From positions 80,352,001 to 80,416,000 of the forward strand of contig OZ320320.1 of assembly GCA_976226885.1 (NCBI GenBank): a DNA stretch of 64,000 nucleotides, written 5' to 3'. Source of the stretch: Iphione sp. A-MEVVRFRX5 (lineage: Eukaryota). The notes under the pieces were generated by a model, which had not been told where the DNA came from, did not search any database, and worked only from the letters and a program-made list of their open reading frames with translations. How positions within the stretch are numbered: the first letter of the stretch is position 1; each line of letters begins with the position of its first letter. This document shows positions 26,783-56,981 of the stretch, one piece after another. Made by a program: the position numbers and the translations under genes.

Positions 26783-28602
26783 CATGTCCCATCTAATGAG
26801 CAGCACACTACCAGTTGATCTACTGTGGTATAAGATGGTATCTACATAGACCCAGTGAAGAGTGGTCATACCATGGGCATATAGTCATCTCTCCACCAAA
26901 GAGACATAGGCCGTGTTTCCATGAATGTGGTGGTGCAGAGTATGTGTGGGATGCTTTTCTCAAATAAGCAATGTCCATAATTCACCGCACTCCACTGTGG
27001 AGAAATGTGTGGACATCAGTGGGGCATTAATTGGAGATGGCACTAGGAAAATGCTGGCATTAATTTTGAACATCTATTAAAATCTACGGAAGTTGCATAT
27101 CATTAGCATAAACCCACAAAACATTGGCGAGCACACACTTTAATTGAGACAGTCATCATGGTAAGATGTGGAGAGGATACATTAACATTGATTTCTGTGT
27201 GTGACTTGACTCAGTCCTTTCACTCTAATTGGAACACAGGGCCCACAGCGCAGTTTTCTATGGTGTGGTTCTCTCTTGGGTGGTTCTCTTGGCTTACCCC
27301 AGGGATGTAGAGTTCTTCCACGGGTTATGGCTGGTCTTGTGCACATTTGTGTGCACATGCAGTAAGAGCACATTTGGAAACCCAGCCTCTAGGGCGAACC
27401 TCCTCATACTGTTTTAGGCCTGGTTTCCTTACATGGGGCAATGTCTGTATGCAATTTTGTGCATTGCTGTGTGTTATTATCAGATAAAAGGCAATAAGTG
27501 TGGGGTGTTCAATACCTGTGGGAGCTGTCTGTGTGCGATGCTGCCAGGTGCCCATTGTCAAACCGGGTCTGATAATTCACTGCACACACAGCAATGCACT
27601 GCCATTTTTCACGTTTTTTTTTTACTTTTCCTCACTTTTAATATGATTTATTGACATGTCTGCACATGTCAGACCTTTTCCACACTTTTCCCCGTCATTT
27701 TCCCCATTTTTTGCAGCCTTCATTTTTGTGTAGACTTTATCATCAAATTCGTCCTTTTCCACATTTTTTCCCGACATTTTTTGCAACCTTTAACATCAAA
27801 TTCATCATTTTCCCCATCATTTCACACACACAAACGTACAACTTACAGCTAGCACACATATGGAATACGCATGTGTGGGAGATTGCGGGAGAGTGCATGA
27901 ACACAAAAAATGCATTCCAATGCACACTGCTGCTCTCTCCCACAGGTATGGAAACTGAGCCTTATTCTGTTTCTACCATTTGCCGTCCTGTCAAAACCTA
28001 AACACTGCTACTTGGTAGACATATACCATCTGAGAGACAATGTGAAGTTATACATTGCTATATGTCTGTGATGCTTGGAGTTATCCCTATGCAGTCACTG
28101 TTAGGAATACCTGTGTATTGACCAAGGTGCCGTAAACTCAGTACAATATGGTTCAAGGAGGTAACTCGCTCTATTTGCAATCCTGGGTCTAGTCTTTTCT
28201 AGTCTGTAGTGCGGGTAGGGCGCGACTCCGCAACCCTCTCAGTGCTGCCCCCTATTGTATTAGATATGAACTAAATCCACAGGAGAGGGCGCTGCGGTCG
28301 CCACATAGCAAGTCATGACTCATCGCCTCTGACTTGTTATGCATTTCTGGGCCGGATTTTCATTCGACATTGTCTCCATAATTGGATTATGTCACCATTA
28401 AGGTGTATCGATCCTCCATTATTGGTTATTCCAGACTTGGCGACCTTACTTTATCTTTAGTTAGCTTTTTATCGACCGCGTTCGAACTACGACAGAAGTT
28501 GCGAAGACGGACTACTGCGCATGCCCATCACCAGTGGCGCCAATTTTGAACCAATCCTCTCTCTGTTAAGGTCGATTGAGTGTCGTCTGCTTTTGGAACG
28601 TC

Positions 28603-30168
28603 ATGGCGCATATGCTGGGCCTCGCTTGTTCGTCCGGAGCGACTGCTCTTTCACCATCTCCTGTGCAAGCACAACTACGTGCGGAACATGGCTACTATCG
28701 GCAGATTACCCCACCCATCCGTGAGAACGAAGAAGGTGATCTAGAAATGGATTTCCAGGTAAATCTTAAACGATCTCGGGACGAAGCATCACCCGTCACG
28801 CCCGGTCCAAATGGGGTACCCAAGAAGCGCCCTATGCCTTGTAAACCGGACAACCAAGCACCTACATGTCCGATTACTTTGCCGAAAGTTTCCGAGGCTG
28901 CAGTTCCTGTTCAAGCTCGTCCGACAGTTCCTGCTACACCCTCCACCCCTTCGTCAACGGAGGAGACTCGACCGAAAACGGTGTACTCATCGGTGGATGA
29001 CGTGAGTGTTCGTTTGGCGGAAGCCCTTTCCTTGTCTCGTCAACATGACAAAGTGATAAAAAACATTTCTGCCGCAGTCACTAAGCTCAATGCCTCTATG
29101 GGCTCAGTGGACAATTTTCTTAATGAACATGACCAGCAAATTTATAGTCTCCAAGCTGATTTAGAACAGGCTAGACGTCATGTGTCGATTCTGAAGGAGC
29201 ACACGCTCACCCATGAAAAATATTCACGACGCCTCAACTTGATTTTTGATGGTGTTGAAGTATTGCCGAATGAAAATTCTGATACACTGCGAAGGAAGTT
29301 AGAAGACCTTTTTCGAGATGCTCTTCGTATTCGGGATATCGATTTAGATGTCGCACATCGCCTTGGTCCTGATGATGCCAGAATTCGTCCTGCCATTGCT
29401 CGGTTTCGCTCCCTTCAAGACCGAAATTTGGTCTGGTTTCGTCGAGCGGAGTTACGAAAACAACGTCCGCTGCAGATCTGGATTCGTGAGGACGTTCCCG
29501 TTGAACAACGCGATAGGCTTAACCAACTGCATCGTATTATGAGGGTTGCCAGAAATTCAGGGAACTACACCAGTGTCCGTGTCAAAGACTTTACCATAAT
29601 TATTGACGGTATTACATATGAGTATAACATGCTTGATATGTTGCCACAGGAGCTTCGCCCGATTAATTTAGCTACGGTGTCAGATAATGAAATATATGTC
29701 TTTGCAGGTCCTGCCCACCCACTGTCATTAGAGTATCCTATTCCATTGTTAATGGATGATCGTACATTTGATTCTATGCTTCACTTCTTAGTGGTACGTT
29801 ATGCGCAATGTCTACGCTTCCCCTGGATTGTCCGTAAGGCCGACAGCGCAGAGGGACACCGTGCCCTCTTTCAACTGTTGTATCACTTGAGAGCACAGGA
29901 CACTGACGATCGCAACGAGAAGGATATTTTGATTCCGGCACTGCAACACAAGTACACCACTTGCTCTGACTCTAAAAGAATTCTTTTAGAGACTGGTGAT
30001 AAACGACTGGGGTGGGCCAGTACAAACCGTCATTGGGGGATAGGTCTCCCATTCAGTCATGGTACATTGTTGAACGCGAATTCTTGGACTGGTTCTAATG
30101 TATATGGTACTATTTTGATGGAGATCCGGTCACACTTGAATGCGACACCAGATCCGGCCCGGGAATGA
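28603..30168 (+). CDS. LINE A ORF1p (521 aa): disordered N-terminus, coiled coil, L1-type RRM/CTD, C-terminal NADAR-like domain (~29690-30140)
   Basis: RRLNLIFDG, LDVAHRLG..RPAIARF, IWIRED (L1 ORF1 RRM). YVFAGPAHPLS..F.S..H, LLETGDKRLGWAS.NR.WGIG, W.GSNVYGTILMEIR..L (NADAR). Confidence 0.9.
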   Translation: MAHMLGLACSSGATALSPSPVQAQLRAEHGYYRQITPPIRENEEGDLEMDFQVNLKRSRDEASPVTPGPNGVPKKRPMPCKPDNQAPTCPITLPKVSEAAVPVQARPTVPATPSTPSSTEETRPKTVYSSVDDVSVRLAEALSLSRQHDKVIKNISAAVTKLNASMGSVDNFLNEHDQQIYSLQADLEQARRHVSILKEHTLTHEKYSRRLNLIFDGVEVLPNENSDTLRRKLEDLFRDALRIRDIDLDVAHRLGPDDARIRPAIARFRSLQDRNLVWFRRAELRKQRPLQIWIREDVPVEQRDRLNQLHRIMRVARNSGNYTSVRVKDFTIIIDGITYEYNMLDMLPQELRPINLATVSDNEIYVFAGPAHPLSLEYPIPLLMDDRTFDSMLHFLVVRYAQCLRFPWIVRKADSAEGHRALFQLLYHLRAQDTDDRNEKDILIPALQHKYTTCSDSKRILLETGDKRLGWASTNRHWGIGLPFSHGTLLNANSWTGSNVYGTILMEIRSHLNATPDPARE

Positions 30169-30216
30169 CTTTCTTGAATTAATTACTTCTTCTTTCTCTT
30201 TTTTATTCTGCTCAAT

Positions 30217-33200
30217 ATGTCTCAACATATTAAGGTTTTTTCTTTAAATGTTAGGGGTCTAAGAGACCCCCTTAAACGGAAAGCATTACTGTTATTTCTA
30301 CTTGATCTCAATGCCGATGTAATTTTTTTACAAGACACTCATTGTACTAATGATGTCTTACGGTTTTGGCAATCACAATGGCCTGGCTTTTGGTTCGCTG
30401 CCAACAACACTTCGCACCAAGGTGGAACAGCTATTCTACTCAAGGGTAAAGATCATTCTCGTATTGTATCAGTGCACAAAGATGTTTTAGGACGCTTTAT
30501 ACATGTACAATGTAAATTTCACCTCGGTATCGTACATTTATTATCTGTGTATGCTCCGGTAGAGTCCCAGGCACACAATCAGCTTACATTTTTTCGGACC
30601 CTCCAACAATATCTTTCTCCTTATGTTACTGAATTATGTATCATGGGTGGTGACTTCAATGTAGCTTTACACCCCAAAATTGATAGAAAAAGTATTTCTA
30701 CATCTCGATCCCAATCAAGGGGGGCGAAAGCCTTGCATGCGCTCTTACATTCTTCCCACTTGATAGATGCCTGGAGACAACTACACCCACAAGATCGCCA
30801 ATTCTCTTGGCACGGTCCTGCTCACAGGACGGCCTCCCGTATAGACTATATTTTTATATCCGAGTCCATTCATCCATATTTATTCGAAGCACAGTTCATG
30901 CCTATGGTTCATACGGATCACCATGCAGTCTGTTGTAAAATTAGAGTTCAAGCTCTTAACAGGGGTAAAGGACTCTGGAAATTTAATTCTGCTCTTCTCC
31001 TGGACCAGGAATATTGTGATTGGCTTTCCAATGCCATACCATTATGGTATAGGGAGGCCAAGGACTCCAACCTTGACCCATTAGCTGTGTGGGATTTTAT
31101 AAAGTTTTCTATTGGCAGTCATACAAGAGTATACTCTTCTCACAAATGTCGTAAGCGTCTACAACATAAGAAAACGTTAGAGGCTCAGCTATCCACCCTC
31201 TTTGTTAGATCAGATAGAGGTTCTCATTCTGAATTTGTAACTGACTGTGAAGAGATAAATAAGATACAAGATGAATTAAGAGATATAGAACTTCAACGTG
31301 CAGAGGGAGCCTTATTCAGATCTAGGATGCGTTGGTTGTCCTTGGGCGAGAAACCAACAGGTTTCTTCCTAAAACTGGAAAAAGAAAGAGCCTTGAAACG
31401 CATGGTAGGCTCTGTTGTGAATGATAATGGTACACTACTTACAGATACTCTAGCTATTAACAAGTATCTTTGTGAATATTTCTCCTCTCTATTTCATGGA
31501 AATGGATTTTCGCCATTACCCCCTACTTATCCTCAGCTGGGCCCCCCGGGATGGGAGGAGACTTTCCCTAAGTTGAATGAAACGGATTACGATTATCTGG
31601 AAGCCCTTCCCTCAGAGCACGATTTTTATTTGAGTCTTAAAAGCCTTAACCGGGGAAAGACCCCCGGTAATGACGGCCTCACACCAGAGTTTTACACTCA
31701 TTTTTGGAATGTTCTTAAATCCCCCCTTCATGAGGCTTGGACATATGCGATGCAACAGGGCCATCTAAGTAAATCGCAGTTACAGGCGGTAATTACTCTT
31801 ATCCCTAAAGAAAATAAGGACAGGACTTATGTTTATAATTGGAGGCCTATATCTTTATTAAATACCGATTTTAAGATTTTCGCAGCGGCTCTGGCAAGGA
31901 AATTTCAAAAGATTCTACCTTCCTATATCTCCCCCTTCCAGGTGGGCTTCATGAAATCTCGCTCCATTGACACTTTGCATAGGATATTACGGGACATAAT
32001 ATTTTACTGGAACAAAAGTAAGACCCCCTCCGCTCTACTAGCCTTGGATTTTTCCAAGGCTTTCGATTCTGTTTCATGGGATTTTATTCTTTATTCATTA
32101 CATCTCCTAGGAGTTGGCCCGACAGCTACTGCTATGATCAAATTACTTTATATGAATTCCACTGCGTGCGTCTTAAATGCTGGTTTTACTTCCCCCTATT
32201 TTGAGCTATCTAAGGGGGTCCATCAAGGGTGCCCCCTTTCCCCGCTACTCTTCAATCTTTCTGTGGAAGTGGTCTCACATCTATTACGGAATAATGCAGA
32301 AATTCCTGGTGTCACCATCTCTAGGGAATCATTTCAGTTATTACAATACGCCGACGATATAACGGTCTTTGCCCAAGATCCCCTAGAGATTCAGGCCATT
32401 TTTCAGGTCCTACAAAAATTTGGAGAGGCTTCTGGTATTGTAACCAACCCTCATAAGTCAGTTGGTGTTCCTTTCAACAAGTTCAACACTTCTCAATGTA
32501 ATGTCACACTCACATGGAATACACAGGTCAAGATCCTTGGTATTTGGTATTTTACTTCACTGACGGAGGACCTCCAATATGTTTATAATTTTGCCCCAGC
32601 CCTTAAGCGTTGTAGAAAAGTATGTAATGCTTGGGCTCCCCGTCAGTTATCTTTAAAAGGACGTATTACTGTTATAAATTCTTTGGTAATACCAATTTTA
32701 CAATATTTTGTCTTCAACTGTTCGGTTCCCATGAAGGTCTTCAAGGAATATGACACCTTGATTTTTAACTTTGTATGGGCTGGTAAAAGATCTAAAATAC
32801 AAAGAGAGGTCCTGTATGGAGATGTACCACAGGGTGGGTTAAAGTTGGCGTCCCTGTGGTACCGAACCTTAGCCAACCGTTTCAGGTTTATCGGCCAATT
32901 GGCCGACGTTCATGTATTGGGGCGGGAATTAGCACAATTTGGTCTAAACACTGACAATCTTTATGAATTTTTCTCTTCTAAGTGGTATACGTCGGTGTAT
33001 CATATACAACATACCTTTTATAAGAGCATGTGTAGTTGGTGGTTCAAATATCATCATAAGCCTGCCACTTGTCCTGATTCAATTTTATCAGAAAACCTTT
33101 GGTCTAACCACTTTGTAAGAAGAATTTCTGTACAACCTTTAAGAATTTATGCGTTACGTCAGGGTATTACTCAAGTTGGTCATATATTAAACCCGGATGG

Positions 33201-34005
33201 TTCTTGGAAGACCTTAGGGGAGTTGAATGATCGACACGCTTCGCATTTAACACAGACCCATTTGGAAGAATTACGTCAGATCGTTCCCCCACAGTATCTA
33301 CACATAGTTTCTTTAATACAGGAGCGTTTTATTGAGAAGGCGATTTTTCTACCTCTTTTTGAAAAAGATTACGACATTACAACACTCTCTTCCAAAAGTA
33401 TATACTCTCTTCTTATCACGGATATGATTCCACCTCCTAAGGCTATTTCCAAATGGGACTCTGTATATGAACAACCTTTACCAGCTGGGGTGGAATGGCC
33501 AGCTGCATTTCAAATGGCATTTAAAGCAGTTTGCTCGCCCAAACTACAATCCTTTCAGTACAAACTGATTCAACGAATCCTACCCTGTAAAACTTACCTG
33601 AAGCAAATAAGGATAACTAACTCCTCACAATGTTCTTTTTGCTCAGATGAGGATACTCTGGAGCATTATTTTATATGGTGTCAAGACACACATAAATTAT
33701 GGAAAATTGTTCTCCGTTGGTGGGATGATTGTATGAATACTAGTACTGCATCTCTGTCTGTATCCGAATTCCTGTTTGGTATCCCGCCTAATGCTCCTCA
33801 TGCATGGTTGTTCAATGCAATTTTAATTCTCACGAAATTTTTCATTTTAAAACAGAAGTCATATCACAATGGTCTATTGCATTTTCGTATTTTAAAATCA
33901 GATATACTATTATATGCTCGACTCTCTTCTTACGTAGTTCAATCCCGCCGTCGAAAACTCTGGCTTTTTGTACTGAATCACCTAAGTTCTTATGAAGACG
34001 AATGA
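30217..34005 (+). CDS. LINE A ORF2p (1262 aa): APE endonuclease, RT, CCHC knuckle
   Basis: SLNVRG, LQDTH, GDFN, SRIDY, HTDH; KTPGNDG, WRPISLLN, LDFSKAFD, QGCPLSP, YADD; CSFC..EDTLEHYFIWC. Confidence 0.97.
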   Translation: MSQHIKVFSLNVRGLRDPLKRKALLLFLLDLNADVIFLQDTHCTNDVLRFWQSQWPGFWFAANNTSHQGGTAILLKGKDHSRIVSVHKDVLGRFIHVQCKFHLGIVHLLSVYAPVESQAHNQLTFFRTLQQYLSPYVTELCIMGGDFNVALHPKIDRKSISTSRSQSRGAKALHALLHSSHLIDAWRQLHPQDRQFSWHGPAHRTASRIDYIFISESIHPYLFEAQFMPMVHTDHHAVCCKIRVQALNRGKGLWKFNSALLLDQEYCDWLSNAIPLWYREAKDSNLDPLAVWDFIKFSIGSHTRVYSSHKCRKRLQHKKTLEAQLSTLFVRSDRGSHSEFVTDCEEINKIQDELRDIELQRAEGALFRSRMRWLSLGEKPTGFFLKLEKERALKRMVGSVVNDNGTLLTDTLAINKYLCEYFSSLFHGNGFSPLPPTYPQLGPPGWEETFPKLNETDYDYLEALPSEHDFYLSLKSLNRGKTPGNDGLTPEFYTHFWNVLKSPLHEAWTYAMQQGHLSKSQLQAVITLIPKENKDRTYVYNWRPISLLNTDFKIFAAALARKFQKILPSYISPFQVGFMKSRSIDTLHRILRDIIFYWNKSKTPSALLALDFSKAFDSVSWDFILYSLHLLGVGPTATAMIKLLYMNSTACVLNAGFTSPYFELSKGVHQGCPLSPLLFNLSVEVVSHLLRNNAEIPGVTISRESFQLLQYADDITVFAQDPLEIQAIFQVLQKFGEASGIVTNPHKSVGVPFNKFNTSQCNVTLTWNTQVKILGIWYFTSLTEDLQYVYNFAPALKRCRKVCNAWAPRQLSLKGRITVINSLVIPILQYFVFNCSVPMKVFKEYDTLIFNFVWAGKRSKIQREVLYGDVPQGGLKLASLWYRTLANRFRFIGQLADVHVLGRELAQFGLNTDNLYEFFSSKWYTSVYHIQHTFYKSMCSWWFKYHHKPATCPDSILSENLWSNHFVRRISVQPLRIYALRQGITQVGHILNPDGSWKTLGELNDRHASHLTQTHLEELRQIVPPQYLHIVSLIQERFIEKAIFLPLFEKDYDITTLSSKSIYSLLITDMIPPPKAISKWDSVYEQPLPAGVEWPAAFQMAFKAVCSPKLQSFQYKLIQRILPCKTYLKQIRITNSSQCSFCSDEDTLEHYFIWCQDTHKLWKIVLRWWDDCMNTSTASLSVSEFLFGIPPNAPHAWLFNAILILTKFFILKQKSYHNGLLHFRILKSDILLYARLSSYVVQSRRRKLWLFVLNHLSSYEDE

Positions 34006-34979
34006 ACTGTGAAACTGGTTGTATCCCACTATAGAATAACTTCTGTAGAATAATAGATGTTTTATTCTCCTATATTTATAGGCCATGGTTTTTGTTATGC
34101 AATGATTACCCCTGTACAATGTCTTAATATTATATCCAATTCACTTTGTCTACCACCACTTATCTAGACTCTTGGAAACTTAACGCGATGCATTGATGTA
34201 ATTCCTACCCTTCACCTTCTCCCTGTATATATATAGATTTTATTGTTAGTGTTGACCTTTCCTTATTTATGTTCTTACTGTTCATACTCTTAAAATACCA
34301 AAAAACATGCTTACTACCAACTGTAAATGTCATCAGAAATAAACTTTTTTTTTTTTGAAATTAGGCATTTGCCTGCTTTTATTTCTGATTGTCGTTGATA
34401 CATGAGTCAGTATAACATGCCTTTTGTTTTTTGGTTTTTACTAAGATGAATAACAACAAGTGAACACATAATGAACTGCTTAGTTATCACTATCAAGTGG
34501 ATGATAGAGAGGCTGCCTTTGTGATACGAGCTGTTTTCTTAAACCGCTTTACAAGCAGAAAGAAGGGTTACATTCATGGGAGAGAAGATAATAAAATCTG
34601 GGTTTTTAAAGTGGAACTCTTATGCTAGTTGAGATATTGGTACCCTCGAATTATTGGGGAGGGGACACTAGTAGGGCCTAACGTGAGTGGTTTAACAAAA
34701 ACCTATGGATCCGTAGTGGATCATCTGATAAGCACCTTTGGTTCAGCTTGGTCTGTACCCCGTCACACCGGGTTAGACCATGATCCTTAAATAGTAATAT
34801 CTAAGTACTTAGTAGATAAGTCCGCTTAGTTTGTAGGACATGGAGATTTTACTTCTGAAGCTTCTAGTTTTTGTAACATTTTGAACTGTTCCAACAGAAA
34901 ACATAATGGGTAGGGTTGGACATTTGATATGCCTAGATGCCCTAGTCCCCTTAATACTAACATAACTCAGGAGGTTAAT

Positions 34980-37900
34980 TCACTGAAGGGACGTAGCGAT
35001 AACCTGTTCAAGAAATGTTCTTTTTTTACCTTTAGACGCGATTGCTTGTAGTCTAAGATTTTGTAAAATTTCGTTTTTCCATGCAGGAAAGCTGACGTCT
35101 CCCTCGTAGAAGGAGTTTCTTTTCATTATAAAGAATTTCGTGAGTATCAAGATTAAGTTCAGGAACCACATATTCGGGGTCTGAGTGAAGATTCCGAAAA
35201 TATATTCATATTTCTGGATCCCTCGTTGAGGAATTGTTACATAAACTTCGCACCAATGTAATACAGCTTCCCAAAGTTCTCTTACTCTCATACATTCAAC
35301 AAAATAGTGAGGTAGATCATCCACCGCTTGACAGTACTGACATTGAATAGTTGAAGTAACTCGGATATTATAGAGGTACTTATTACACGGTATGGTCCTA
35401 TGTAGGACTTTGTATTGAAAAGATTGGTGTTTAGTCGAGACTGTAGCTATAAATGGATTCTTAAATATCTTATCCCATGGGATTTCATCAGGAGGTGAAA
35501 CTCTTTCCTTTGCATACCAAGACCTTATTGCTGTTGGTTTGTTTTTCTCTTGGTTGATTAGTGCCCAGTATATAGTAGCAGCGGCAGATTGAGAGATATC
35601 CAGGTCTTTGTCACCAATTGTTATAATAAGTGCCTCCTCAGTTAGGGGAATGTCCTGCTCTTGAGTCAGGGTTCGGAGGTGATCGGGTAAACAGTTCTTG
35701 AGTAGATTTAGTTGGGGAGAACTAAGTTCAAGACCATATATCTCTCTCATCTGTTCGACTGAATAAAAAGTACCATTCACATCTAAGATGTTGTCAACCA
35801 ATACAATGTGGGAAGCAATACATTTTCTCCTTAGTCTAGAGGGCGGAGAGGGTCTGTTCATATGAGGGCTATTCCATAAAGGTAGAGCTCTGACCCCCAG
35901 GGCTGTTACCGGGGGGTGTTTTGCTTGGGTTTTCCAGATTTTAACAATTTCTAGGTAGAAGGGATGCCGGACCCGTTTCCCTTGTGCCCTTTCAAATTTA
36001 AAGAAGGTAACTGGGTCTTTTCCGCATAATGCGTAGGTTACAAAGTCTTTACCTAAATATTCAGGCTGTACGAGGTCTGCTACTGTTTTCAGACGGTTAG
36101 CTAGTGTTCGAGACCTTAGGGAAGCTAATTTCAGGCCACCCTCTGGGATAGGTTTCTGTAGGGTATTTTTAGCTATTTTAGGTGACCGTTTGTTCCAGAG
36201 GAACGATTGTGTAAATTTGTCGTATATTTTATAAACCTCTTCTGGGACATGGTGGTTGAAGACCAAAAATTGCATGACAGGAAGAACCAAAGTGTTCAGC
36301 ACTGTGATTTTTCCTTTTAGTGATAGGTTCCTATGAGCCCACGTTTGACATATGTCTCTACACACCTGTAGCTTAGGAGGAAAATTCAGATCATAGTTCA
36401 TATGGTCATCAATTGAGTTCGTATACCAGATTCCTAATATCTTAACGTGGTTTCGCCACTGTATTGGGATTGAGGATTCCCCAGTTTTAAAGTTTGTCAC
36501 CGGGAGTCCTATACTCTTCTGGGCATTGATTCTAATACCAGCTGCCTGGCCAAATAGATGTAAGGTTTCAAACAACGAGTCTATTTCCGTTGGACATTGG
36601 ACGAAACAGGTTAGGTCATCAGCGTACTGAACATTGTACAATCTCTCGTTATGGACTGTAACCCCCGGATAGTTGGGGTGATTTTTAATCATTATTGAGA
36701 GAATCTCCACTACCATGTTGAAGAGTAGGGGGGAAGCGGGACACCCCTGGTGTACCCCTTGTCCCAACGTAAAGTATTGGGTTGTGACTCCGTTGTTTAT
36801 GATACAAGCTTCCGAGGTTGAGTAGAGAAGTCTAATTAGGTTGGTAATGTAGGGGCCCATACCAAATGCGTGTAGGGTAAAGAGGAGAAAGTCCCATGAG
36901 ACCCTGTCAAACGCTTGGGCAAAATCAAGGGCGAGGATAGCCCCTTTTATCTTCTCTTGCTGCCAATACCATATTACATCTCGCAGTATTCTATGAATAG
37001 TGGCTATATTTCTCTTTGGCATGAAACCTATTTGTGTGTTGGCTATATAATTAGGTAAGTACCTCCTCAGTTTTTGAGCAATCACAGTAGAAAGGATTTT
37101 ATAATCTACGTTTAACAGGGCTATTGGGCGCCAACTACCAGCTAGTAACGGGTCTTTTCCTGATTTTGGTAGGAGAGTAATTACCGTTTGTCGTTGGGAT
37201 GGGGTAAGAGTGCCTTCCATTATAGCTTGTTGCATCGTTTGGAAGAGTAGTGGGAGGAGTTCTTTCCAGAAGCATGAGTAAAATTCTACTGGCAGCCCGT
37301 CATTCCCCGGGGTTTTTCTCTGATGGAGGTTCTTAAGTGCTTTAGTAAGGTCGAGTTTTGTGAGCGGTGCTTCAAGTGAGTCATAGTCATCTTGAGTGAT
37401 ACGGGGGAGAAGTTGTTCCCAATTTGTGGGACCAAGAAAGGAGAAATCTGGGGGCAGCGGGGAAAAACCCTGACCCTGATATCTTTGCGAAAAGTGGTTA
37501 TATAACTGATCAGTAATCTCTCTTTGAGTCGTAAGAAGAACATTATTGTCAGAATATAATTGAGTAATAGCCCTTTTTTGCACCTTGAGTCTTTCTAGTC
37601 TGAGGAAGTATCTGGAAGGTCTCTCTCCTTCCACGTACCACCTCTCCTTAGAGCCAGCAAGGGAGACACTAGCTTTTTGGAGTTCTATATCCCTAATGAT
37701 ATTTTGAATGTTTTCAAGTCGATGTACTATCGGATCCGAGTCTGGATCTTCAATATTTACTAAGTGTAGTTTCTCATCAAATTCCTTATGAAGGGCCACA
37801 AGAAATTTTCGAGTTTCTTTAGATTTTGACTTTTGGTATTTCCTGGTAAATAGACCAACCGAAAATTTTAGAAAGTCCCAGGCTTTAGTGGGAGTAAGTT

Positions 37901-38324
37901 TTTGATCTAGTGCCTCCTGGTACCATTGTGAGAGAAGTGGCTTTAAGGTTTCACAGTATTCTTGGTTTTCTAACAGAGCTGTGTTGAGCTTCCATAGCCC
38001 TTTACCACGAGGGGGTATGGCAAGATCAAATCTGACCACAATACCGTCGTGGTCCGAGTGGTGACACCTACGGATATAAGTTTTAACAACATGACTAAGA
38101 AGATCAGAAGATACGAATACATAGTCAATTCTGGATGCTCTGGAAAATGAAGAGTTATACCATGTGTACCCTGGAATGCTTGGGTTACTATGCCTCCATG
38201 CATCTTGCAGGTCAAGACATTTAACAAAGTTCAAAAGTCTTTTATCATTGTTGATTCTTGGAGCGGTAGGCATAGACGGCCGTGGTGGGGCTTGTAGCCT
38301 ATCATCAGAATTATTAATTGTCAT
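34980..38324 (-). CDS. LINE B ORF2, 3' part (rest of APE, RT, CCHC)
   Basis: SRIDY, HSDH, KTPGNDG, LDFAQAFD, QGCPASP, YADD, CQYC....HYFVEC. It begins exactly where the 43950 segment stops. Confidence 0.95.
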   Translation of the reverse strand: MTINNSDDRLQAPPRPSMPTAPRINNDKRLLNFVKCLDLQDAWRHSNPSIPGYTWYNSSFSRASRIDYVFVSSDLLSHVVKTYIRRCHHSDHDGIVVRFDLAIPPRGKGLWKLNTALLENQEYCETLKPLLSQWYQEALDQKLTPTKAWDFLKFSVGLFTRKYQKSKSKETRKFLVALHKEFDEKLHLVNIEDPDSDPIVHRLENIQNIIRDIELQKASVSLAGSKERWYVEGERPSRYFLRLERLKVQKRAITQLYSDNNVLLTTQREITDQLYNHFSQRYQGQGFSPLPPDFSFLGPTNWEQLLPRITQDDYDSLEAPLTKLDLTKALKNLHQRKTPGNDGLPVEFYSCFWKELLPLLFQTMQQAIMEGTLTPSQRQTVITLLPKSGKDPLLAGSWRPIALLNVDYKILSTVIAQKLRRYLPNYIANTQIGFMPKRNIATIHRILRDVIWYWQQEKIKGAILALDFAQAFDRVSWDFLLFTLHAFGMGPYITNLIRLLYSTSEACIINNGVTTQYFTLGQGVHQGCPASPLLFNMVVEILSIMIKNHPNYPGVTVHNERLYNVQYADDLTCFVQCPTEIDSLFETLHLFGQAAGIRINAQKSIGLPVTNFKTGESSIPIQWRNHVKILGIWYTNSIDDHMNYDLNFPPKLQVCRDICQTWAHRNLSLKGKITVLNTLVLPVMQFLVFNHHVPEEVYKIYDKFTQSFLWNKRSPKIAKNTLQKPIPEGGLKLASLRSRTLANRLKTVADLVQPEYLGKDFVTYALCGKDPVTFFKFERAQGKRVRHPFYLEIVKIWKTQAKHPPVTALGVRALPLWNSPHMNRPSPPSRLRRKCIASHIVLVDNILDVNGTFYSVEQMREIYGLELSSPQLNLLKNCLPDHLRTLTQEQDIPLTEEALIITIGDKDLDISQSAAATIYWALINQEKNKPTAIRSWYAKERVSPPDEIPWDKIFKNPFIATVSTKHQSFQYKVLHRTIPCNKYLYNIRVTSTIQCQYCQAVDDLPHYFVECMRVRELWEAVLHWCEVYVTIPQRGIQKYEYIFGIFTQTPNMWFLNLILILTKFFIMKRNSFYEGDVSFPAWKNEILQNLRLQAIASKGKKRTFLEQVIATSLQ

Positions 38325-38327
38325 AAC

Positions 38328-38759
38328 CCGTTTCTCTCACCCACAGTCTTCTCACCGATTGCATTTGAAAACATTGTTTTTGAAAATGTGGTTAGTGCGT
38401 TCTACTTTGCTAAGTCGCGCATCTGCGATGATGGGCATGCGCAGAGAAAAATCATTGATAGCCGCTCTGGATTCGAAGCTGCACGAGTTGCTAGTAAAGT
38501 AAAGACTTGTGAAGAATGGGAAAAGGTTTCCGAGGTAATGTTATTTGATATTATCACTGACAAGATGCGCTTGAATCCAAAAGGTGTGCAGAATCTATTA
38601 GAAACTGGCGCATCAAACTTAGTATATGCCGATTATGACTCGCTGTTGGGAAGTGGTTGTAGGTACGATGGCAGTTGTGAAGAGAAAATTGAGTTCAATG
38701 GGCGTAACCTACTGGGCAAATGTTTGATGAAGCTGCGTGAAGAGTTTCTACCGCAATAG
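38328..38759 (+). CDS. LINE D upstream ORF remnant: NADAR/YbiA-like domain, open back to the truncation point
   Basis: PFLSPTVFSPIAFENIVFENVVSAFYFAK..KIIDSRSGFEAARVA..WEKVSEVML..K..NP....LLETG...LVYADYDSLLGSG..F.GRNLLGKCLMKLREEF. This is co-linear with recalled E. coli YbiA motifs. Confidence 0.85.
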   Translation, partial: PFLSPTVFSPIAFENIVFENVVSAFYFAKSRICDDGHAQRKIIDSRSGFEAARVASKVKTCEEWEKVSEVMLFDIITDKMRLNPKGVQNLLETGASNLVYADYDSLLGSGCRYDGSCEEKIEFNGRNLLGKCLMKLREEFLPQ

Positions 38760-38946
38760 GTATGAAGTCAGGTTGTGCGATCAATTGCTACACACTGTAG
38801 GCCAACTTTGTCCGACTCATTTCTTGTTGTACTGATCGCGCTCCACAACCAGATACGGCTCGTATATGTATACTGTGCTCACTACCAGTTTGATGTATTA
38901 CCATAACTGTTTGTTGGGTGATTAAGTGCGCTTAAATAATTTTCAG

Positions 38947-39674
38947 AGTACCGGATCGTCAACCGACGTGGTGTAAACAATGCGCCGAGAACACGTATTT
39001 TGATGATCATGGACTACCGCACTGCGGACGCGGTCCGTTTGATACCAGTCGATGGTCTTCCGCCGATTACTATTCACATTGTGAGAGTGAAGCGCCTGAG
39101 TTATCGTATGATAAAGGCGCATCACCTGTTCTTCGACACTTCCACCTACGACTTGGTTATGATGTCTGTAGGGATGCGCGAAGTGATCAGGAGAGAGGAT
39201 GGCCAGTGGACTGTCTTCCGCCGCTCTGCGCAGGACTACCGGTGGTGCTTGCTACGATACATCGAGCGGTTTACTAGGATGGTTTGTGGACCGCAACGCC
39301 TGGGTGGAAAACTGGTTGTGTGCCCACTGGCCAGTGCTGATCTGTCTCGATTGGAGCCTGACATAATCGACACGACAGAACAACTACTACTGAATACCGT
39401 AGTCAAATTGCACAACGTGATAGTGAGGATGACCTCAGACAGGCTGGGTTTGGCGCAGCCACGACTCGACCTGCCTGTCAACCTTTATAACAATCAGGGC
39501 ATGTCTGTGATGTCGGACCATCTGAAACAAAATGGTGCGAGTGTGACGTGGAGTGTAACGGTAGAGTGGTCATATACTCTGTATGACTTCCTTCGTAACT
39601 ACTTGCAACGCTATGGGAAGCACCTGCCTGACCCATATGTTTTTCCTTCCACTAGTGACTCGGAGGAGGACTGA
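38947..39674 (+). CDS. LINE D second upstream ORF: degenerate SGNH/GDSL esterase-like fold
   Basis: RILMIMDYR (block I-like, Ser replaced by Tyr), YDLVMMSVGMREV (block III G-x-N-D-like), VVCPL, KLHNVI, SDHLKQNG (D-x-x-H-like). Open from 38940, first ATG at 39003. Confidence 0.5.
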
Positions 39675-40578
39675 CGTGTGGGTACGCGCTGTGAGTAACT
39701 CAACCCTATATTATGTGTCCTCTTATTCTTATCTACACACTCCAATTGCGGGACAGATATGGACATTTAGCCAATGGCCCCACAGAGTACGCTTCGAACC
39801 GCATCTTGTTTTTCTCTTCATACCCCTGTGATGCTTTGTAAACAAGGCATCTGAGATTTACTTACCACCCTGTATATATCTCAGCCCGGTAAAAGTATGT
39901 CATGTGTTCTGGATATCATTCCTGGCGTTACCTGTTGCTCTGCTGTGATAATTCTCATATTCTATTCCAGTGATCCGATAAGACAAATATATTTCTCTAA
40001 ATTGAATCGTACAAGAACCTCCACTTATTTGTATTCATTACCGTATTTACATTAACTCTACTGTCTGTACTCCACGACATAATCCTGTGATGTTGTGTAA
40101 GAAGAGAATTGCATGAATCGCACCATGCCTCATTCATTACTGACTAAGACTACATTTTTATGTCCTCGTATTCATTCATGAAACTGGTGCATAGTTTGCA
40201 CATTAGAGTATTCATTAACATCCAGCTAATCCAGAACTTTAAGACATAACCTGGACTATTGATCTACATCCAGATTGTTGTACTGTATTGTATCGTTTGT
40301 TGCACTGTATTATATCGTTTGTGTACTGTATTTGCCGTCCGACTAGCGGAACTGTGTTGTACTTTATGATGTCTGACTTATCGTTATCAAATGACCTGTG
40401 ATTTTCTTATGTATAACCAAACATTTCCAGTACACTCTTCAGGGTTCATTTCCTGCCCATGCTATAAGTGTTTATGACAGTGCCTTGACTTACTGACGAT
40501 AGCCTGACTGCCTCGGGGGGGGTGGTCGCATATAGTCCGTGTGTAGAAGCTTGCTCCCGGTGCAAACTGAATACTACA

Positions 40579-43329
40579 ATGGGGCTAACTGTGGTCTCAT
40601 ACAATATCCGCAGTTTGGGAAAGAAGGTCAGTGAACTGGGACATTTGTTGGCTTGCCACAGCGTGGATGTATGTTGCATCACTGAATCTTGGCTAAACAG
40701 CACTTACCAAGATTCCAGCGTGGCCATTCCTGGGTACGATTTAGTGCGCCAGGATAGAAACACGATCCAGGCCCAAAGAGGAGGGGGTATAGTCATTTAC
40801 TTTAAAAGTCACTTTCAGGTGACAAGGAAATATGACGTGGGGCCGTCGGAATCCGCCTGCGAAATGCTGGGGATTAGACTTAAGGCTGGCAAGAGAAGGC
40901 CAATAGATGTGCTGGCAGTCTATAGACCTCCGGGTGACCCGATAGCTAAGTCAACGCATGCGATTGACCAAGCAGTGAGGGCACTACCCAGACGTGGCCG
41001 AAGTGACAGGATCATCACCGGTGATTTTAATTATCACTTTGGCTGTCCAGGCAGAGTTGGTAATGCTATAGCCGATATATTAGCAGGCCGAGGTTTCAGC
41101 CAGCTGGTAACACAAGCAACAATGATCTCCTCTGACTCTGTCCTAGATCACCTATGGGTTGACTTCACTGGTCACCTTGGTGGCAAGATTATTGAGTGGT
41201 TCTTAAGCGACCACCTGGCGGTATCTGTTACCATCAAAAAAGGAGTACGGTCTAAACAGAAGGAGACCGTAGTAACACGCAAATGGAACCAAGTTGACGT
41301 GATGGCCCTACATGACAAGCTGAGGAGTGAAGCTATAGTAATGGAGGGCTGCCACGAGTCAGCATGGGATAGCTTTGTGGACAAATTACGTGGTGAGTTA
41401 GAGGTTGTTGCCCCTCCAATCACCACGACCCGCAAAGTTGATAGAGACGGATTCACAATGAGCAACGGATTAGCCGAGTTGGCTCGAGATCGCCTATACT
41501 ACTTCCGCAAGTGGAAGAGGTACAGACAGGAGGATGATCATAGGATTTTTAAGCACCTAGACAAGGTGCTAAAATCTGAACTAAGGAAAGAACGGAAATT
41601 CTACTGGACAAGTAGAGCAAACTCAGCTATGGGTGACCCCCGTAAGCTATGGCAGGTGTTAAACCTGGCCTTAGGAAGGGGAGAGACTAAGGTGACTCTA
41701 CCTAGTCTGTCCAAAGAAAATGGTGAAACGGGGGAAAACCTAGCAAATCGCTTTAACACCTACTTCGTTGATGAAGTCCAAAAGCTAGTAAGGGAACCGA
41801 AGAAAACCGTAACTCTTGGCAGGATAAAATCTGAAAGGAGATTTGAGTTGTCTGAGCCGACACCCTGTACCGTGAGACCTCTATTGACCAGCCTGAAACT
41901 ACACAAGTCATCGGGCATAGAGGGAGTACCTATTAAGATCCTGAAACCTCTCTTGGTCCTTTGCATCGACTTCGTTGCCTGGGTGTTCAACTGTATCTAT
42001 CTGTCGGGCCACTACCCAACCTCCTGGAAGGTAGCCCGCGTGACCCCCGTCTTCAAGAAGGGGGACGCTCAGCTAACTTCCAATTACCGCCCAGTTTCAA
42101 TACTACCCGTGCAGGGTAAAGTATTTGAAAGATGGCTAGTACAGGGGGTTACAAAAGAGCTGGAGAGACAATGCTTCCTGAGCCCAAACCAGCACGGTTT
42201 CCGCCGTAATCGTGGAACCGACACCGCGATTGCTAAACTGCTATACGAGACGCATGAAGCCTTGAACAGGGGTTACTACTGCAGCCTGACGCTCTTTGAT
42301 TTCAAAAAGGCGTTCGATTTAGTGTCTCACAGCAGTGTTGTCAGCAGACTCCGGATAGCTGGTGCAGGGCCAAAACTCTGTAGGGTGATGGAGAGCTATC
42401 TCACTGGCAGAAGACAGTATGTCCGCTGCAGTGGCTTTGACTCTGCTGAGCTTCCTGTGATGACTGGAGTGCCGCAGGGGTCAGTGGTTGGCCCCATAGC
42501 TTTCTGTCTGGTGGTAGACACTGTGGTGGACATACTACCTAAAGGGACCTGTGCCGTACTGTACGCGGACGATCTGTCAGTGCTGTGTGTAGCCAGAGAC
42601 CTGATGAGGCTACGCGAGATCACTCTGCGTACAGTCCAGGAAGTAATCAAATGGAGTGGGGACCAGGGATTGGTATTGAGCCTGGCCAAGTGCAACTATA
42701 TGCCATTGGGTAAGGCATCAGGTATTCCCATGGACATTGTAGTCGATGGGACAATCCTTGAGATGGCAGAGGAAGTGAAGCTCTTAGGGTATCACCTAGA
42801 CTCTAAGCTCAAATGTGGGAAAGCAGTGAGGAAAATTAAATCCACCATGTGGGTAGCTGCGTTAAGAATCAGCAGAGCAAAGCGGAACTTACCGCTGGCT
42901 GTGAGAGTCCTATTATTCAAGTCACTAGTGGTCTCCATTTTGCATTACCATGCAGTGTCACTCTATGGCATGTCCCGGGGAGACATGGTAAGACTACAGG
43001 TGCATCTGAATAGGTGTGCCCGTCTATCCATACAGGACGGTGCCCATCTGTCATCAAGGGTGCTCCAGACTAGGTTCGGAATTGAAAGACTTGAATCAAT
43101 GGTAAGCTCGAAAGGGGTGCATGCAATCCACAAGCTAAGCAAGTTGGGGCTGGTTGATAAAGCTGCAGTAACCAACACCAGGATGGGAACAACTCAAAGA
43201 GTAAGGGTTTCCAAACCAAAGAGTAAGTTGTTCTCAGGGTCACTTGCCTACGCGGCAGTGAAGACCTGGAACAGCCTTGACCCTAGTGTCAAGGCTATGG
43301 AGAGGCTGCCAAGGGAGATTGGCGGCTAA
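40579..43329 (+). CDS. LINE D ORF2p (916 aa): APE plus RT, intact
   Basis: SYNIRS, ITESWL, YRPP, GDFN, LDH, SDH; NYRPVSIL, QHGFR, DFKKAFD, GVPQGSVVGP, YADD, C-terminal YAAVKTWNSL. Confidence 0.96.
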   Translation: MGLTVVSYNIRSLGKKVSELGHLLACHSVDVCCITESWLNSTYQDSSVAIPGYDLVRQDRNTIQAQRGGGIVIYFKSHFQVTRKYDVGPSESACEMLGIRLKAGKRRPIDVLAVYRPPGDPIAKSTHAIDQAVRALPRRGRSDRIITGDFNYHFGCPGRVGNAIADILAGRGFSQLVTQATMISSDSVLDHLWVDFTGHLGGKIIEWFLSDHLAVSVTIKKGVRSKQKETVVTRKWNQVDVMALHDKLRSEAIVMEGCHESAWDSFVDKLRGELEVVAPPITTTRKVDRDGFTMSNGLAELARDRLYYFRKWKRYRQEDDHRIFKHLDKVLKSELRKERKFYWTSRANSAMGDPRKLWQVLNLALGRGETKVTLPSLSKENGETGENLANRFNTYFVDEVQKLVREPKKTVTLGRIKSERRFELSEPTPCTVRPLLTSLKLHKSSGIEGVPIKILKPLLVLCIDFVAWVFNCIYLSGHYPTSWKVARVTPVFKKGDAQLTSNYRPVSILPVQGKVFERWLVQGVTKELERQCFLSPNQHGFRRNRGTDTAIAKLLYETHEALNRGYYCSLTLFDFKKAFDLVSHSSVVSRLRIAGAGPKLCRVMESYLTGRRQYVRCSGFDSAELPVMTGVPQGSVVGPIAFCLVVDTVVDILPKGTCAVLYADDLSVLCVARDLMRLREITLRTVQEVIKWSGDQGLVLSLAKCNYMPLGKASGIPMDIVVDGTILEMAEEVKLLGYHLDSKLKCGKAVRKIKSTMWVAALRISRAKRNLPLAVRVLLFKSLVVSILHYHAVSLYGMSRGDMVRLQVHLNRCARLSIQDGAHLSSRVLQTRFGIERLESMVSSKGVHAIHKLSKLGLVDKAAVTNTRMGTTQRVRVSKPKSKLFSGSLAYAAVKTWNSLDPSVKAMERLPREIGG

Positions 43330-43949
43330 TGTGTCTGTAGAAAGGCTAAGTGTGGTTCCCCGGTTGTGACACGGGCACACTACAGGGCTGAGACAGTAGG
43401 GAGCTTAATTAGAAAGGGAGTAACAGTTGTAAGCAGTTGTACTGCTATCTCGGTCTGGTATGGCACTTAGAGTGTGGTAAGGAAATAGCATGTCGATGTG
43501 AGGCACTATGGAGAGAGCATGTATCTGTCAGTCCATAACGAAACTATCGTGTCTGTTGACTACCTCTCCAGTGCACTGTATGGGCAAGTGAACAGTATTA
43601 CAATATGGATTCCTTTGAGTAAATGATACCTATGTCTCATCCTATAACCCAATTTTTCGGATGGGGCTTTGTCAGCCATATATGCGTAAACAGGGTAATG
43701 ATCGGATGACACTGGTTTAGTCCGGGTCAGATGCAGATCTCCACAGCAAGTTATCATAGTTGATGTATTGTGGCAAAAGCTAGCCGTCTCACTGTATCCT
43801 ATATGTGTGCTGTATCCTATATGTGTCCTGTATTCTGTATATGTGTGTTCGTCCACGTTTGAGTCATGTTATGTTATCACACCTATCTCTTGGAAACCTC
43901 TGTACTCATATGGAGATATTGAATAAAATTGAATTGAATTGAATTGAAT

Positions 43950-44393
43950 ATTAAAATCACCTAGAATAATCCAGGGGGCCGGAGTTTGTTGTACGATATA
44001 ACCCTGTATAGACCTTAAAACGTTCGATTGATTAACTGTCGATGACGCCGGAGGGATATATGTCGCCAGTACGTTGTACGTTGCTGCGTTGATAAGTAGT
44101 TCTGCGTGAAGGTAAAGTCCTTCTGGGTCAGGATAGTATGATGTGACAGTAATATTCTCATTGTTGTTAAATAGGATAGAAGTCCCTGCATGATGGGAAG
44201 AGCCATGTGAGAAAAGCCACTGACCCTTCCACTGGGTGGACCAAATGTTTACGTCATCAGGTGTACTATGAGTTTCTTGTAAACAGATCACATCGTATTC
44301 AGTAATGAAACTGAGGATTGCTTTACGCTTATTAACATTGCGTAAGCCCCTAACATTTAAGGTAATGAACGAAACACTTGGTGAACGAGACAT
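43950..44393 (-). CDS. LINE B ORF2, 5' part (148 aa of APE, ending GDFN)
   Basis: TLNVRG, LQETH, YIP, ILGDFN, followed by the D tail. Confidence 0.93.
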
Positions 44394-44489
44394 GGTTAGA
44401 ACAAAGTGGCTGAAACAAAAAGTGGTATTAGTGAGCCCCTAGGTCAACGGACCCAGGGGGGGGCTGAGACCCCTCAGTAGAAGGCCCCT

Positions 44490-46154
44490 TCACTGGGAAG
44501 GGGCAGCAGATCCTTTCGGTGTTCCCGGCTGAGGTGGCTGTGCCGCCTGAGCAGGAGGTTGAGGATTAGGTTGAGGCCCCCGGTTGGCCTCCTCTTCGGC
44601 AGGGTCGTTGTACGGTAGGTTGTCACGAATTTCCATCAGTATACGTCCGTACCAATTGTCTCCCTTCCAGCTGGGGGGTGTGGCAATCTCTGGGTGAGAA
44701 AATGGGAGTCCGATGCCCCATTTTCTATTGATGGTCGCCCAACCGATCGTCTTCTTCCCAGTGAGTCGTAGTTGTTTATGTACCCTCACATCCGATCTGA
44801 ACCGATGTTCTAGGGCCGGGAGGAGAATGTCCTTTTCAAGTGTATCGTCGGGGACAGCTGCTCGTAGGATATACAATTGCTGGAACAACTGCCTGTGGCT
44901 TTCGGGACGAACCGCCTTATTGACGACGGCGCTCTGCTTCTTTTCGAGGGCGTAGGTGATCACAAGATACTGCAAAATAGACTGGAAATTGCCATGTGTC
45001 ATCATTAGATTATATGAGTGTTCGAGTGAGAAAGGGTGCTCAGGGCCCGCAAAGATATACATCTGTCTCGTCTCCACGGTTGCGAGAGTGGCTGGTCTTA
45101 AGAATCTTGGGAGATCGTTCCAATTGTGGTGGTCATATTGAGTATTGCCTAGAAAGAGTGTGAAGTTCTTGATTCTTACACTGGGGAACTGGTTGGAGTT
45201 CTTAGCAGTGCGAGCTATACGCTTGAGGATCTCCAATCTATCACGATGTTCAGTCGCTAGGTCCTCTCTTATCCAGATTGTTTCATGCCTATAATCCTTG
45301 AGCATGGAACGGCGAAACCATACTTCATTTCTTTCTCGGAGAGTACGGAAGCGGGCAATGACTGCTCTATTTCTGCCTCTCTCAATCCCCAGTCTGTGTG
45401 CTACATCTAAGCGAACGTGCGACAAGTTGAGCGCTTCCCCGAAAAGCCTCTCTAGTCGCTTTCTCAGAGAGTCAGCAGTTTCTTCTGGATTTTCTTCAAA
45501 GCCATCAAATATTAAATTGAGACGTCTATCAAACTTCTCTTGAACCAAGGCTAGCTCTCTATGGGTTTCAACCTTCCTGTTAAGAGTTTGAATTTCACAG
45601 TTTGAGCTAAAAATCTGCCTATCGTGTTCTTCTAAGAACTCTTCATACTCTTCTAGCTTTGATTCAAATTTAGTAACAGATGAAGAAATTTTTTCGATAC
45701 TTGCAGACTGGTCATTTGTTTTTTTCCAGAGCGCCGAGATTTTTGTAGTAATGGCGGCCATGTCCGTGTGCGGAGACTTTGGTACTGCGGCTTGTTCGTC
45801 GTCAGGGATATTCGCTGGCTGAGGTTGTTCCCTTGTGAGCTGGCCATCATCTCGTCCTTGATGGTCCTTGTCGTGTTTAACCGGAGTTTTGTTGTTATCG
45901 TTGAAGGTGAGCGCCTTCTTCGCCTGCTGTGTGGATACCGGCGAGTTCGTCAACGTGGTCTGGTCCCTAGTTCTCTTCAAAGATTGCGACTGGTGGTCCA
46001 TTGTTTGGTCCTCCTCGTCCTCTTCGATATCTGAGAAGTCCGTGTCCTTTAGGAGAGAGTATGCATGATCGGAGACGGTGTGACGTTTATATGCTGTGAG
46101 TCGGGAGATATTTTCCCCCCTCGCTTGGTGTGGAGAGCGTAAATTGCCTAGCAT
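44490..46154 (-). CDS. LINE B ORF1p (554 aa): coiled coil, L1-type RRM/CTD, C-terminal NADAR-like domain (~45066-44616)
   Basis: Co-linear with LINE A ORF1: RRLNLIFDG, LDVAHRLG, IWIRED, YIFAGPEHPFS, GWATINRKWGIGLPFSH, W.GDNWYGRILMEIR. Confidence 0.9.
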   Translation of the reverse strand: MLGNLRSPHQARGENISRLTAYKRHTVSDHAYSLLKDTDFSDIEEDEEDQTMDHQSQSLKRTRDQTTLTNSPVSTQQAKKALTFNDNNKTPVKHDKDHQGRDDGQLTREQPQPANIPDDEQAAVPKSPHTDMAAITTKISALWKKTNDQSASIEKISSSVTKFESKLEEYEEFLEEHDRQIFSSNCEIQTLNRKVETHRELALVQEKFDRRLNLIFDGFEENPEETADSLRKRLERLFGEALNLSHVRLDVAHRLGIERGRNRAVIARFRTLRERNEVWFRRSMLKDYRHETIWIREDLATEHRDRLEILKRIARTAKNSNQFPSVRIKNFTLFLGNTQYDHHNWNDLPRFLRPATLATVETRQMYIFAGPEHPFSLEHSYNLMMTHGNFQSILQYLVITYALEKKQSAVVNKAVRPESHRQLFQQLYILRAAVPDDTLEKDILLPALEHRFRSDVRVHKQLRLTGKKTIGWATINRKWGIGLPFSHPEIATPPSWKGDNWYGRILMEIRDNLPYNDPAEEEANRGPQPNPQPPAQAAQPPQPGTPKGSAAPSQ

Positions 46155-46166
46155 CTTCACTTCTGC

Positions 46167-56979: not shown

Positions 56980-56981
56980 CC

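Follow-up and report, generated by a model that had tools for sequence, protein, structure and literature searches.

A Conserved NADAR-Fold Domain with a Degenerate Active Site in the ORF1 Protein of an L1-Superfamily Retrotransposon from Iphione sp.

The usual picture of the proteins encoded by the first open reading frame (ORF1) of long interspersed nuclear elements (LINEs) is that of RNA chaperones that have few accessory domains. A 64,000-nucleotide stretch of contig OZ320320.1 of Iphione sp. A-MEVVRFRX5 (assembly GCA_976226885.1, positions 80,352,001 to 80,416,000 of the forward strand; hereafter the window) contains an element, LINE A, whose ORF1 protein (ORF1p) ends in a NADAR domain, the fold of the YbiA-type hydrolases. 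What role does such a domain have in a retrotransposon protein, and is it still an enzyme? LINE A is interrupted by a second element, LINE B, which is in turn interrupted by a third, LINE C. Sequence comparison identifies as new that LINE A and LINE B have lost catalytic residues kept by most of their relatives while the domain is still conserved. The NADAR domain of LINE A is probably a retained pseudo-enzyme, inherited from a catalytic clade and now acting as a non-catalytic module of ORF1p.

Architecture and Fold of ORF1p

The reading frame of ORF1 is already open from a TTG at 28576, from which ORF1p residues are numbered here; the first ATG is at 28603 and the stop codon ends at 30168. 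The following features were assigned.

28603..30168, + strand: ORF1 of LINE A, 521 aa counted from the ATG, open frame
28996..29229, + strand: coiled coil, aa 141-218; one long helix in the model (model residues 2-78), aligned with the L1 ORF1p trimer 2yko
29230..29643, + strand: RNA recognition motif (RRM), aa 219-297, and C-terminal domain (CTD), aa 298-356; Foldseek matches to 2yko/2ykp/2ldy/2w7a, Q9UN81 and P11260
29674..30144, + strand: NADAR-fold domain with degenerate active site, aa 367-523; Pfam, profile alignment, Foldseek and MAFFT

An AlphaFold2 model of ORF1p aa 140-530, built from an alignment of 62 relatives, formed one continuous chain with a predicted local distance difference test score (pLDDT) of 95.1 and a predicted template modelling score (pTM) of 0.82. 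The top Foldseek match in the PDB was the human LINE-1 ORF1p trimer 2yko (E = 1.6e-7, template modelling (TM) score by target 0.70), and the coiled coil, RRM and CTD were recovered together in the matched trimer structures 2yko/2ykp/2ykq. In AlphaFold DB/Swiss-Prot, model residues 2-216 matched L1 ORF1p (Q9UN81, P11260) and L1TD1. Pfam Transposase_22 gave no match in LINE A ORF1p at E ≤ 0.1; as judged from the predicted model, the likeness to L1 ORF1p is structural only and does not extend to a Pfam sequence match.

Model residues 228-387 matched the NADAR-ADP-ribose complex 8BAU from Phytophthora (E = 7e-7, TM 0.66), and additionally C. elegans F44E2.8 and irg-1 and plant PYRR. E. coli YbiA was likewise found with the ORF1p model (2B3W, E = 7e-5; P30176, TM by hit 0.72). 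At the sequence level, Pfam NADAR (PF08719) covered ORF1p aa 393-521 with E = 1.6e-12 and 48.4 bits, above the gathering cut-off of 35.1. A profile built from 62 LINE NADAR domains detected 8BAU at E = 1.6e-28 and YbiA 2B3W at E = 1.2e-20. LINE A ORF1p begins with a disordered N-terminus and a trimerising coiled coil, continues with the RRM and the CTD, and ends in the NADAR fold.

An earlier reading of the letters without database searches (the sequence-only reading) had described an L1/Tx1-type ORF1p with a C-terminal NADAR domain at 28603-30168, on which Pfam PF08719, the AlphaFold2 model and Foldseek now agree. All the motifs that it quoted occur in the translation: FAGPAHPLS, FDSMLH, LLETGDKRLGWASTNRHWGIG and WTGSNVYGTILMEIRSHL. 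The second of these, given as 'F.S..H', is present but is not a canonical NADAR motif, as LINE A has Leu where the catalytic Glu belongs.

Active Site of the NADAR Domain

Key NADAR residues have been defined by the 8BAU co-crystal structure and by mutagenesis of the E. coli C7 NADAR (PMC11543638). The distal ribose is contacted by E43 and E125 (or D171), and the pyrophosphate by K50, W89, R93, W133 and D130; K50 also touches the adenine, with K75 nearby. Efficient hydrolysis in vitro requires the equivalents of K50 and E125. At the E43 equivalent, Gln inactivates the enzyme and Ala has a minor effect in vitro, while neither variant rescues in vivo; E125 defines the YbiA subfamily (PMC11543638). 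Positions are numbered here according to 8BAU and were mapped unambiguously by alignment of the 62-domain profile to 8BAU/YbiA and by MAFFT alignment with YbiA.

LINE A carries L385 at N27, L402 at E43, Y409 at K50, F432 at K75, D444 at W89 and W480 at E125, and it retains W133 as W487. LINE B is identical to LINE A at N27, E43, K50, W89, E125 and W133 (L, L, Y, D in place of Trp, W and W). Neither domain therefore has the catalytic and ADP-ribose-binding residue set of NADAR enzymes. Among 157 NADAR domains of relatives, N27 is found in 142, E43 in 148, K or R at position 50 in 148, W89 in 155, E125 in 144 and W133 in 142, and all six positions are intact in 124. The five positions replaced in both elements (N27, E43, K50, W89 and E125) are thus conserved in 90-99% of the relatives' domains.

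The changes extend beyond these residues. Fourteen positions that are at least 70% conserved in 143 ORF1-type domains are altered in both LINE A and LINE B, with the same replacement at 12 of the 14; the shared replacements include the K75 equivalent (F) and the KFxQN motif. The scaffold of LINE A is kept: F376, S384, A410, L470, T473, WGIG, W504, N508, G511, L514 and R518 are all present. In a quick tree of ORF1 NADAR domains the two elements pair with a Shimodaira-Hasegawa-like approximate likelihood ratio test (SH-aLRT) value of 100, although the tree flags a long-branch join with one relative (P0001), so that the placement of the pair is unsure. Mainly because the positions are nearly universally conserved in the relatives, YbiA and 8BAU, the replacements appear to have arisen once, before LINE A and LINE B split, from a catalytic ancestor. 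With such a pocket, canonical hydrolysis and canonical ADP-ribose binding by the LINE A/B domain would both be unlikely.

E125 has also given way to an aromatic residue, Y in both cases, in LINE C and in an abalone protein (Haliotis rufescens XP_048255699.1, first NADAR repeat), apparently independently; this may hint at a recurrent functional conversion. That abalone repeat (N27 to L, E43 to L, E125 to Y) was considered as kin of the LINE A domain and rejected, since the tree joins it to the repeats of its own protein. Its replacements, similar to those of LINE A, therefore look convergent.

Structure, Age and Conservation of LINE A

LINE A is bounded by a perfect 13-bp target-site duplication (TSD), and an exact-repeat scan of the window located the 13-mer ACTAAATCCACAG at 28270 and 46532 only, with no third copy. 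Its remaining parts are as follows.

28270..28282, + strand: 5' TSD, ACTAAATCCACAG, exact 13-bp repeat (28270 and 46532)
28283..28602, + strand: 5' untranslated region (UTR), between the TSD and the first ATG of ORF1
30169..30216, + strand: inter-ORF spacer of 48 nt, with two in-frame TGA stops
30217..34005, + strand: ORF2, 1262 aa, with apurinic-like endonuclease (APE), reverse transcriptase (RT) and zf-RVT
34006..34344, + strand: first part of the 3' UTR, its last letters being CATCAGAAATAAAC
46501..46531, + strand: end of the 3' UTR, TTGGCATGTGCCTTTT, plus a poly(A) of about 15
46532..46544, + strand: 3' TSD, the same 13-mer as at 28270-28282

ORF1 upstream and ORF2 downstream lie within this one TSD-bounded element, as in elements with an L1-type ORF1p, and share one reading frame. 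ORF2 matched Exo_endo_phos, RVT_1 and zf-RVT in Pfam; we take the zf-RVT at its C-terminus to be consistent with the L1 superfamily. The 3' UTR is cut in two by LINE B, and the ORF2 of LINE B is in turn cut by LINE C. Since the TSD is perfect, a poly(A) tail is present and all ORFs are open, LINE A is taken to be young. It is a full-length, recently inserted and apparently competent L1-superfamily LINE, in line with the sequence-only reading, which had called it intact.

LINE A and LINE B share 41% amino acid identity in ORF1 and 40% in ORF2, which makes LINE B a second family. Within ORF1p, identity was 57% in the RRM, 49% in NADAR, 44% in the CTD, 27% in the coiled coil and 26% in the N-terminus. 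Synonymous differences are saturated (proportion 0.76-0.92), so that only proportions of differences, and not the ratio of nonsynonymous to synonymous rates (dN/dS), can be read from the pair. As the identity of NADAR falls between those of the RRM and the CTD, the ORFs are open and the insertion signatures are intact, this comparison indicates that purifying selection has probably acted on the NADAR domain as strongly as on the RNA-binding core.

The ORF1-NADAR Family

The ORF1s of LINE A and LINE B were combined into one profile, and a HMMER search with it against 1.84 billion representatives gave 5495 matches at E ≤ 1e-3, 1363 at ≤ 1e-10 and 180 protein clusters at ≤ 1e-30. The stretch from the RRM through the end of NADAR formed one continuous match in 141 of the 150 matches listed. 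An APE or APE-RT ORF lay downstream in all four contigs with sufficient downstream DNA (L001, L002, L008 and L009). Downstream of one canonical ORF1-NADAR gene (P0003, on L001) lies an ORF2 with which that of LINE A aligns collinearly, at 31% identity over 1224 aa. By full-length ORF1 homology and a downstream APE-RT, LINE A appears to belong to an ORF1-NADAR LINE clade. Several clusters of 415-489-aa NADAR proteins were found in the ESM Atlas, with Annelida as the commonest recorded taxon.

A word-index protein search with the whole LINE A ORF1 returned no match; with the family alignment it returned five proteins, and with the ORF2 RT region 2399 matches. An L1-like LINE (L003; 325-1596 and 1880-5689) has an ORF2 RT region 39% identical to that of LINE A and a 423-aa ORF1 without NADAR. 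Because this NADAR-free ORF1 stands beside a related ORF2, NADAR is an accessory of only part of the LINE clade.

The sequence-only reading had not counted NADAR among the known accessory domains of LINE ORF1, and the novelty of the fusion did not survive. Among the Crassostrea gigas entries of Repbase, several Tx1 LINE families are already noted to have an ORF1 with an apparently YbiA-family NADAR of unclear role (PMC12477816, Genome Biol 2025), and the 180 clusters above show the family to be large. Within the literature searched, this was the one paper linking NADAR to transposable elements. The fusion has been noticed before and not characterised: this large, old ORF1p-NADAR family has so far received one sentence in the literature.

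Role of the Domain and Alternative Explanations

The history that best fits these observations begins before LINE A. The NADAR domain would have been inherited from an old, widespread LINE clade with an intact YbiA-type active site and not captured by LINE A itself. In the canonical relatives, it is most likely an N-glycosidic ADP-ribosyl-base hydrolase borne on the ribonucleoprotein (RNP). In the ancestor of LINE A and LINE B, the pocket would have been rebuilt (N27L, E43L, K50Y, K75F and E125W, together with loss of W89), with the fold-determining residues kept during rebuilding and later purifying selection equal to that on the RNA-binding core. The former catalytic cleft would now be filled by aromatic residues. 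In LINE A, it most likely serves the ORF1p particle as a module without catalysis. It may provide a further surface for binding nucleic acid or a ligand, act in protein interaction or as a decoy, or contribute structurally to the particle. The reading as a pseudo-enzyme is drawn from the joint loss of several essential positions, not from one replacement.

Several points weigh against this reading. The E-to-A exchange at the E43 position had only a minor in vitro effect in the E. coli C7 NADAR (PMC11543638). A new active site could, in principle, be formed from other residues. Moreover, LINE A and LINE B are two copies of the lineage, and selection is deduced from one pairwise comparison.

The domain might still be an active hydrolase, with a re-wired site or another substrate, that shields LINE RNA, cDNA or target DNA from host ADP-ribosylation. 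The chemistry for such a role exists: NADARs reverse guanine ADP-ribosylation on DNA and RNA as well as cytidine ADP-ribosylation (PMC11543638, PMC11833690, PMC12945103), and pierisins and shellfish CARP-1 form the same N2-guanine ADP-ribose linkage. Retention of the NADAR fold, the WGIG loop and the GxN...R helix, together with the constraint on the LINE A/B domain, would also fit. However, E43, K50, W89, E125, N27 and K75 are lost or replaced by hydrophobic or aromatic residues in both elements. Conservation of these positions in the relatives is 90-99%, and among them the K50 and E125 equivalents are needed for efficient hydrolysis, while W89 and K50 hold the pyrophosphate (PMC11543638). 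We consider an active enzyme unlikely. The same losses bear on the suggestion of the sequence-only reading that the LINE A domain counters ADP-ribosylation-based host defence; that would need an active site, and at E43, K50, W89 and E125 LINE A has L, Y, no equivalent and W. The counter-defence idea is plausible only for the canonical relatives.

Loss of the key catalytic residues would equally be expected of a functionless relic whose replacements are mere decay, and the related NADAR-free ORF1 of L003 marks the domain as dispensable in the clade. Decay is nevertheless very unlikely. Neither the LINE A nor the LINE B domain has stops or frameshifts; its identity between the two elements, at saturated synonymous sites, is roughly double the value seen in the coiled coil or in the N-terminus; the scaffold residues are kept and 12 of the 14 derived replacements are identical; and the AlphaFold2 model is very confident. 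That the fusion is an artefact, due either to a LINE ORF1 that by chance continued into a NADAR exon of the host or to chimeric assembly, is effectively refuted. No evidence in its support was found, LINE B and the 141 continuous matches have the same single-ORF architecture, the model is a continuous chain, and the TSDs bracket the entire element.

Beyond the retained pseudo-enzyme of LINE A, a broader scheme could be drawn in which most of the clade carries an active NADAR eraser, the LINE A/B lineage has turned it into a conserved but dead reader or decoy, and the change of E125 to an aromatic residue recurs in a second clade of the window; as a whole, we regard this scheme as doubtful. Through the ORF1p-NADAR fusions, retrotransposons are connected with a recently discovered chemistry, the ADP-ribosylation of bases in nucleic acids. 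The fusions also offer research on ADP-ribosylation a natural experiment: among closely related elements, some have an intact and others a dismantled active site, and both kinds are apparently mobile. Should the canonical domains be active, host ADP-ribosyltransferases of the pierisin/CARP-1 type may restrict invertebrate retroelements, and the dead, conserved version would be a pseudo-enzyme retained by a selfish element.

LINE B and LINE C

The two nested elements were annotated as follows.

34345..46486, - strand: LINE B, within the 3' UTR of LINE A; poly(A) and TSD
44490..46160, - strand: LINE B ORF1, 556 aa, architecture like LINE A ORF1; Pfam NADAR E = 1.5e-9
~38325-43868, + strand: LINE C, inside the ORF2 of LINE B; 5'-truncated within the NADAR coding region
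38298..38756, + strand: partial NADAR coding region of LINE C, open frame; Pfam NADAR E = 6.5e-16
40522-43329, + strand: APE-RT ORF2 of LINE C, 935 aa

LINE B has a poly(A) of 12 nt (T12 on the + strand, 34345-34356) and a perfect 14-bp TSD, CATCAGAAATAAAC, with copies at 34331 and 46487. Its other ORF pieces (43869-44393 and 34980-38324, both on the - strand) are open except for the LINE C insertion. The insertion point in the 3' UTR of LINE A lies directly after ATCAGAAATAAAC. At their 3' ends, LINE A and LINE B both carry ATCAGAAATAAA, and a small hairpin (GGCA..TGCC) lies between it and the poly(A). This motif and hairpin may be a conserved 3' recognition element, with a possible target preference.

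LINE C is a different LINE clade from LINE A and LINE B. Its ORF2 is without meaningful similarity to an L1-like ORF2, and its NADAR domain falls on a very long branch in another sub-clade of the tree, nearest to P0143 and P0120. In this domain E43 is replaced by V, E125 by Y and W133 by L, with K50 and W89 kept. Short tandem repeats occur at about 43790-43850, at the 3' end of LINE C. A middle ORF (39000-39674, + strand, 224 aa) had no Pfam match; its ESM-Atlas neighbours are PC-esterase/SGNH-like (scores 0.86-0.93), which is a lead only. It was compared with the middle ORF of L008 as a possible counterpart, and this was rejected, the two being unrelated.

Other Observations in the Window and Databases

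A series of retroelement ORFs occupies 54163-58154 (- strand). Within it, the ORF at 55076-56497 combines an RT C-terminus, RNase H and a Dam-like N6-adenine methyltransferase (Pfam Dam, E = 1.4e-6) and is DIRS-type-like. The sole apparent host gene seen in the window is an uninterrupted 815-aa ORF at 60594-63041 (- strand) for a secretin-family (7tm_2) G protein-coupled receptor (GPCR) of Methuselah-like / DUF8401 / Somatomedin-B type, whose nearest atlas clusters are invertebrate.

Non-LINE proteins with 4 to 8 tandem NADAR domains were also encountered, namely the abalone protein XP_048255699.1 (P0036; 4240 aa, 7 NADAR repeats), P0015 and P0062; many of their domains have altered catalytic positions. 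The matches of the family alignment also included P0161, a protein of 453 aa in which a Macro domain precedes a canonical NADAR.

Comparison with Known Systems

The ORF1p of human and mouse LINE-1 resembles that of LINE A in its coiled coil, RRM and CTD and in being encoded before ORF2 in a bicistronic element. However, it stops after the CTD, whereas LINE A ORF1p adds a NADAR fold of about 160 aa, and the sequence identity between them is 15-17%. The closest described counterparts of the fusion are the C. gigas Tx1 LINEs, in which an ORF1 with a YbiA-type NADAR likewise precedes an APE-RT ORF2. This likeness is by description and not by sequence, and the degenerate active site is absent from the published account (PMC12477816).

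The YbiA-subfamily hydrolases (P. nicotianae NADAR 8BAU and E. coli YbiA 2B3W) have the same fold as the LINE A domain, including the WGIG loop and the C-terminal GxN..G..LM..R helix. The free-standing enzymes carry E43, K50, W89 and E125, where LINE A instead has L, Y, no equivalent and W. DarT1-associated NADAR antitoxins are operon partners of DarT1 and have a conserved K115 and D171 (E. coli C7 numbering). LINE A differs from them in being a eukaryotic retrotransposon with no ADP-ribosyltransferase (ART) gene in the element and in having F and W at the K75 and E125 equivalents.

NADAR domains have also entered other replicators. An Ectocarpus Gypsy long terminal repeat (LTR) lineage carries one at the N-terminus of Pol (PMC12477816), and the replicases of invertebrate nidoviruses contain NADAR and macrodomain inserts (PMC11848433). 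Like LINE A, these are selfish RNA-templated replicators with an acquired NADAR, but the carrier is Pol or a replicase polyprotein and not ORF1p, and they are other classes with independent acquisitions. A precedent for an enzyme-fold accessory domain within a LINE ORF1p is given by CR1/L2-type elements with an esterase (PMC3905857); there the domain has an SGNH esterase fold, whereas in LINE A it is a NADAR.

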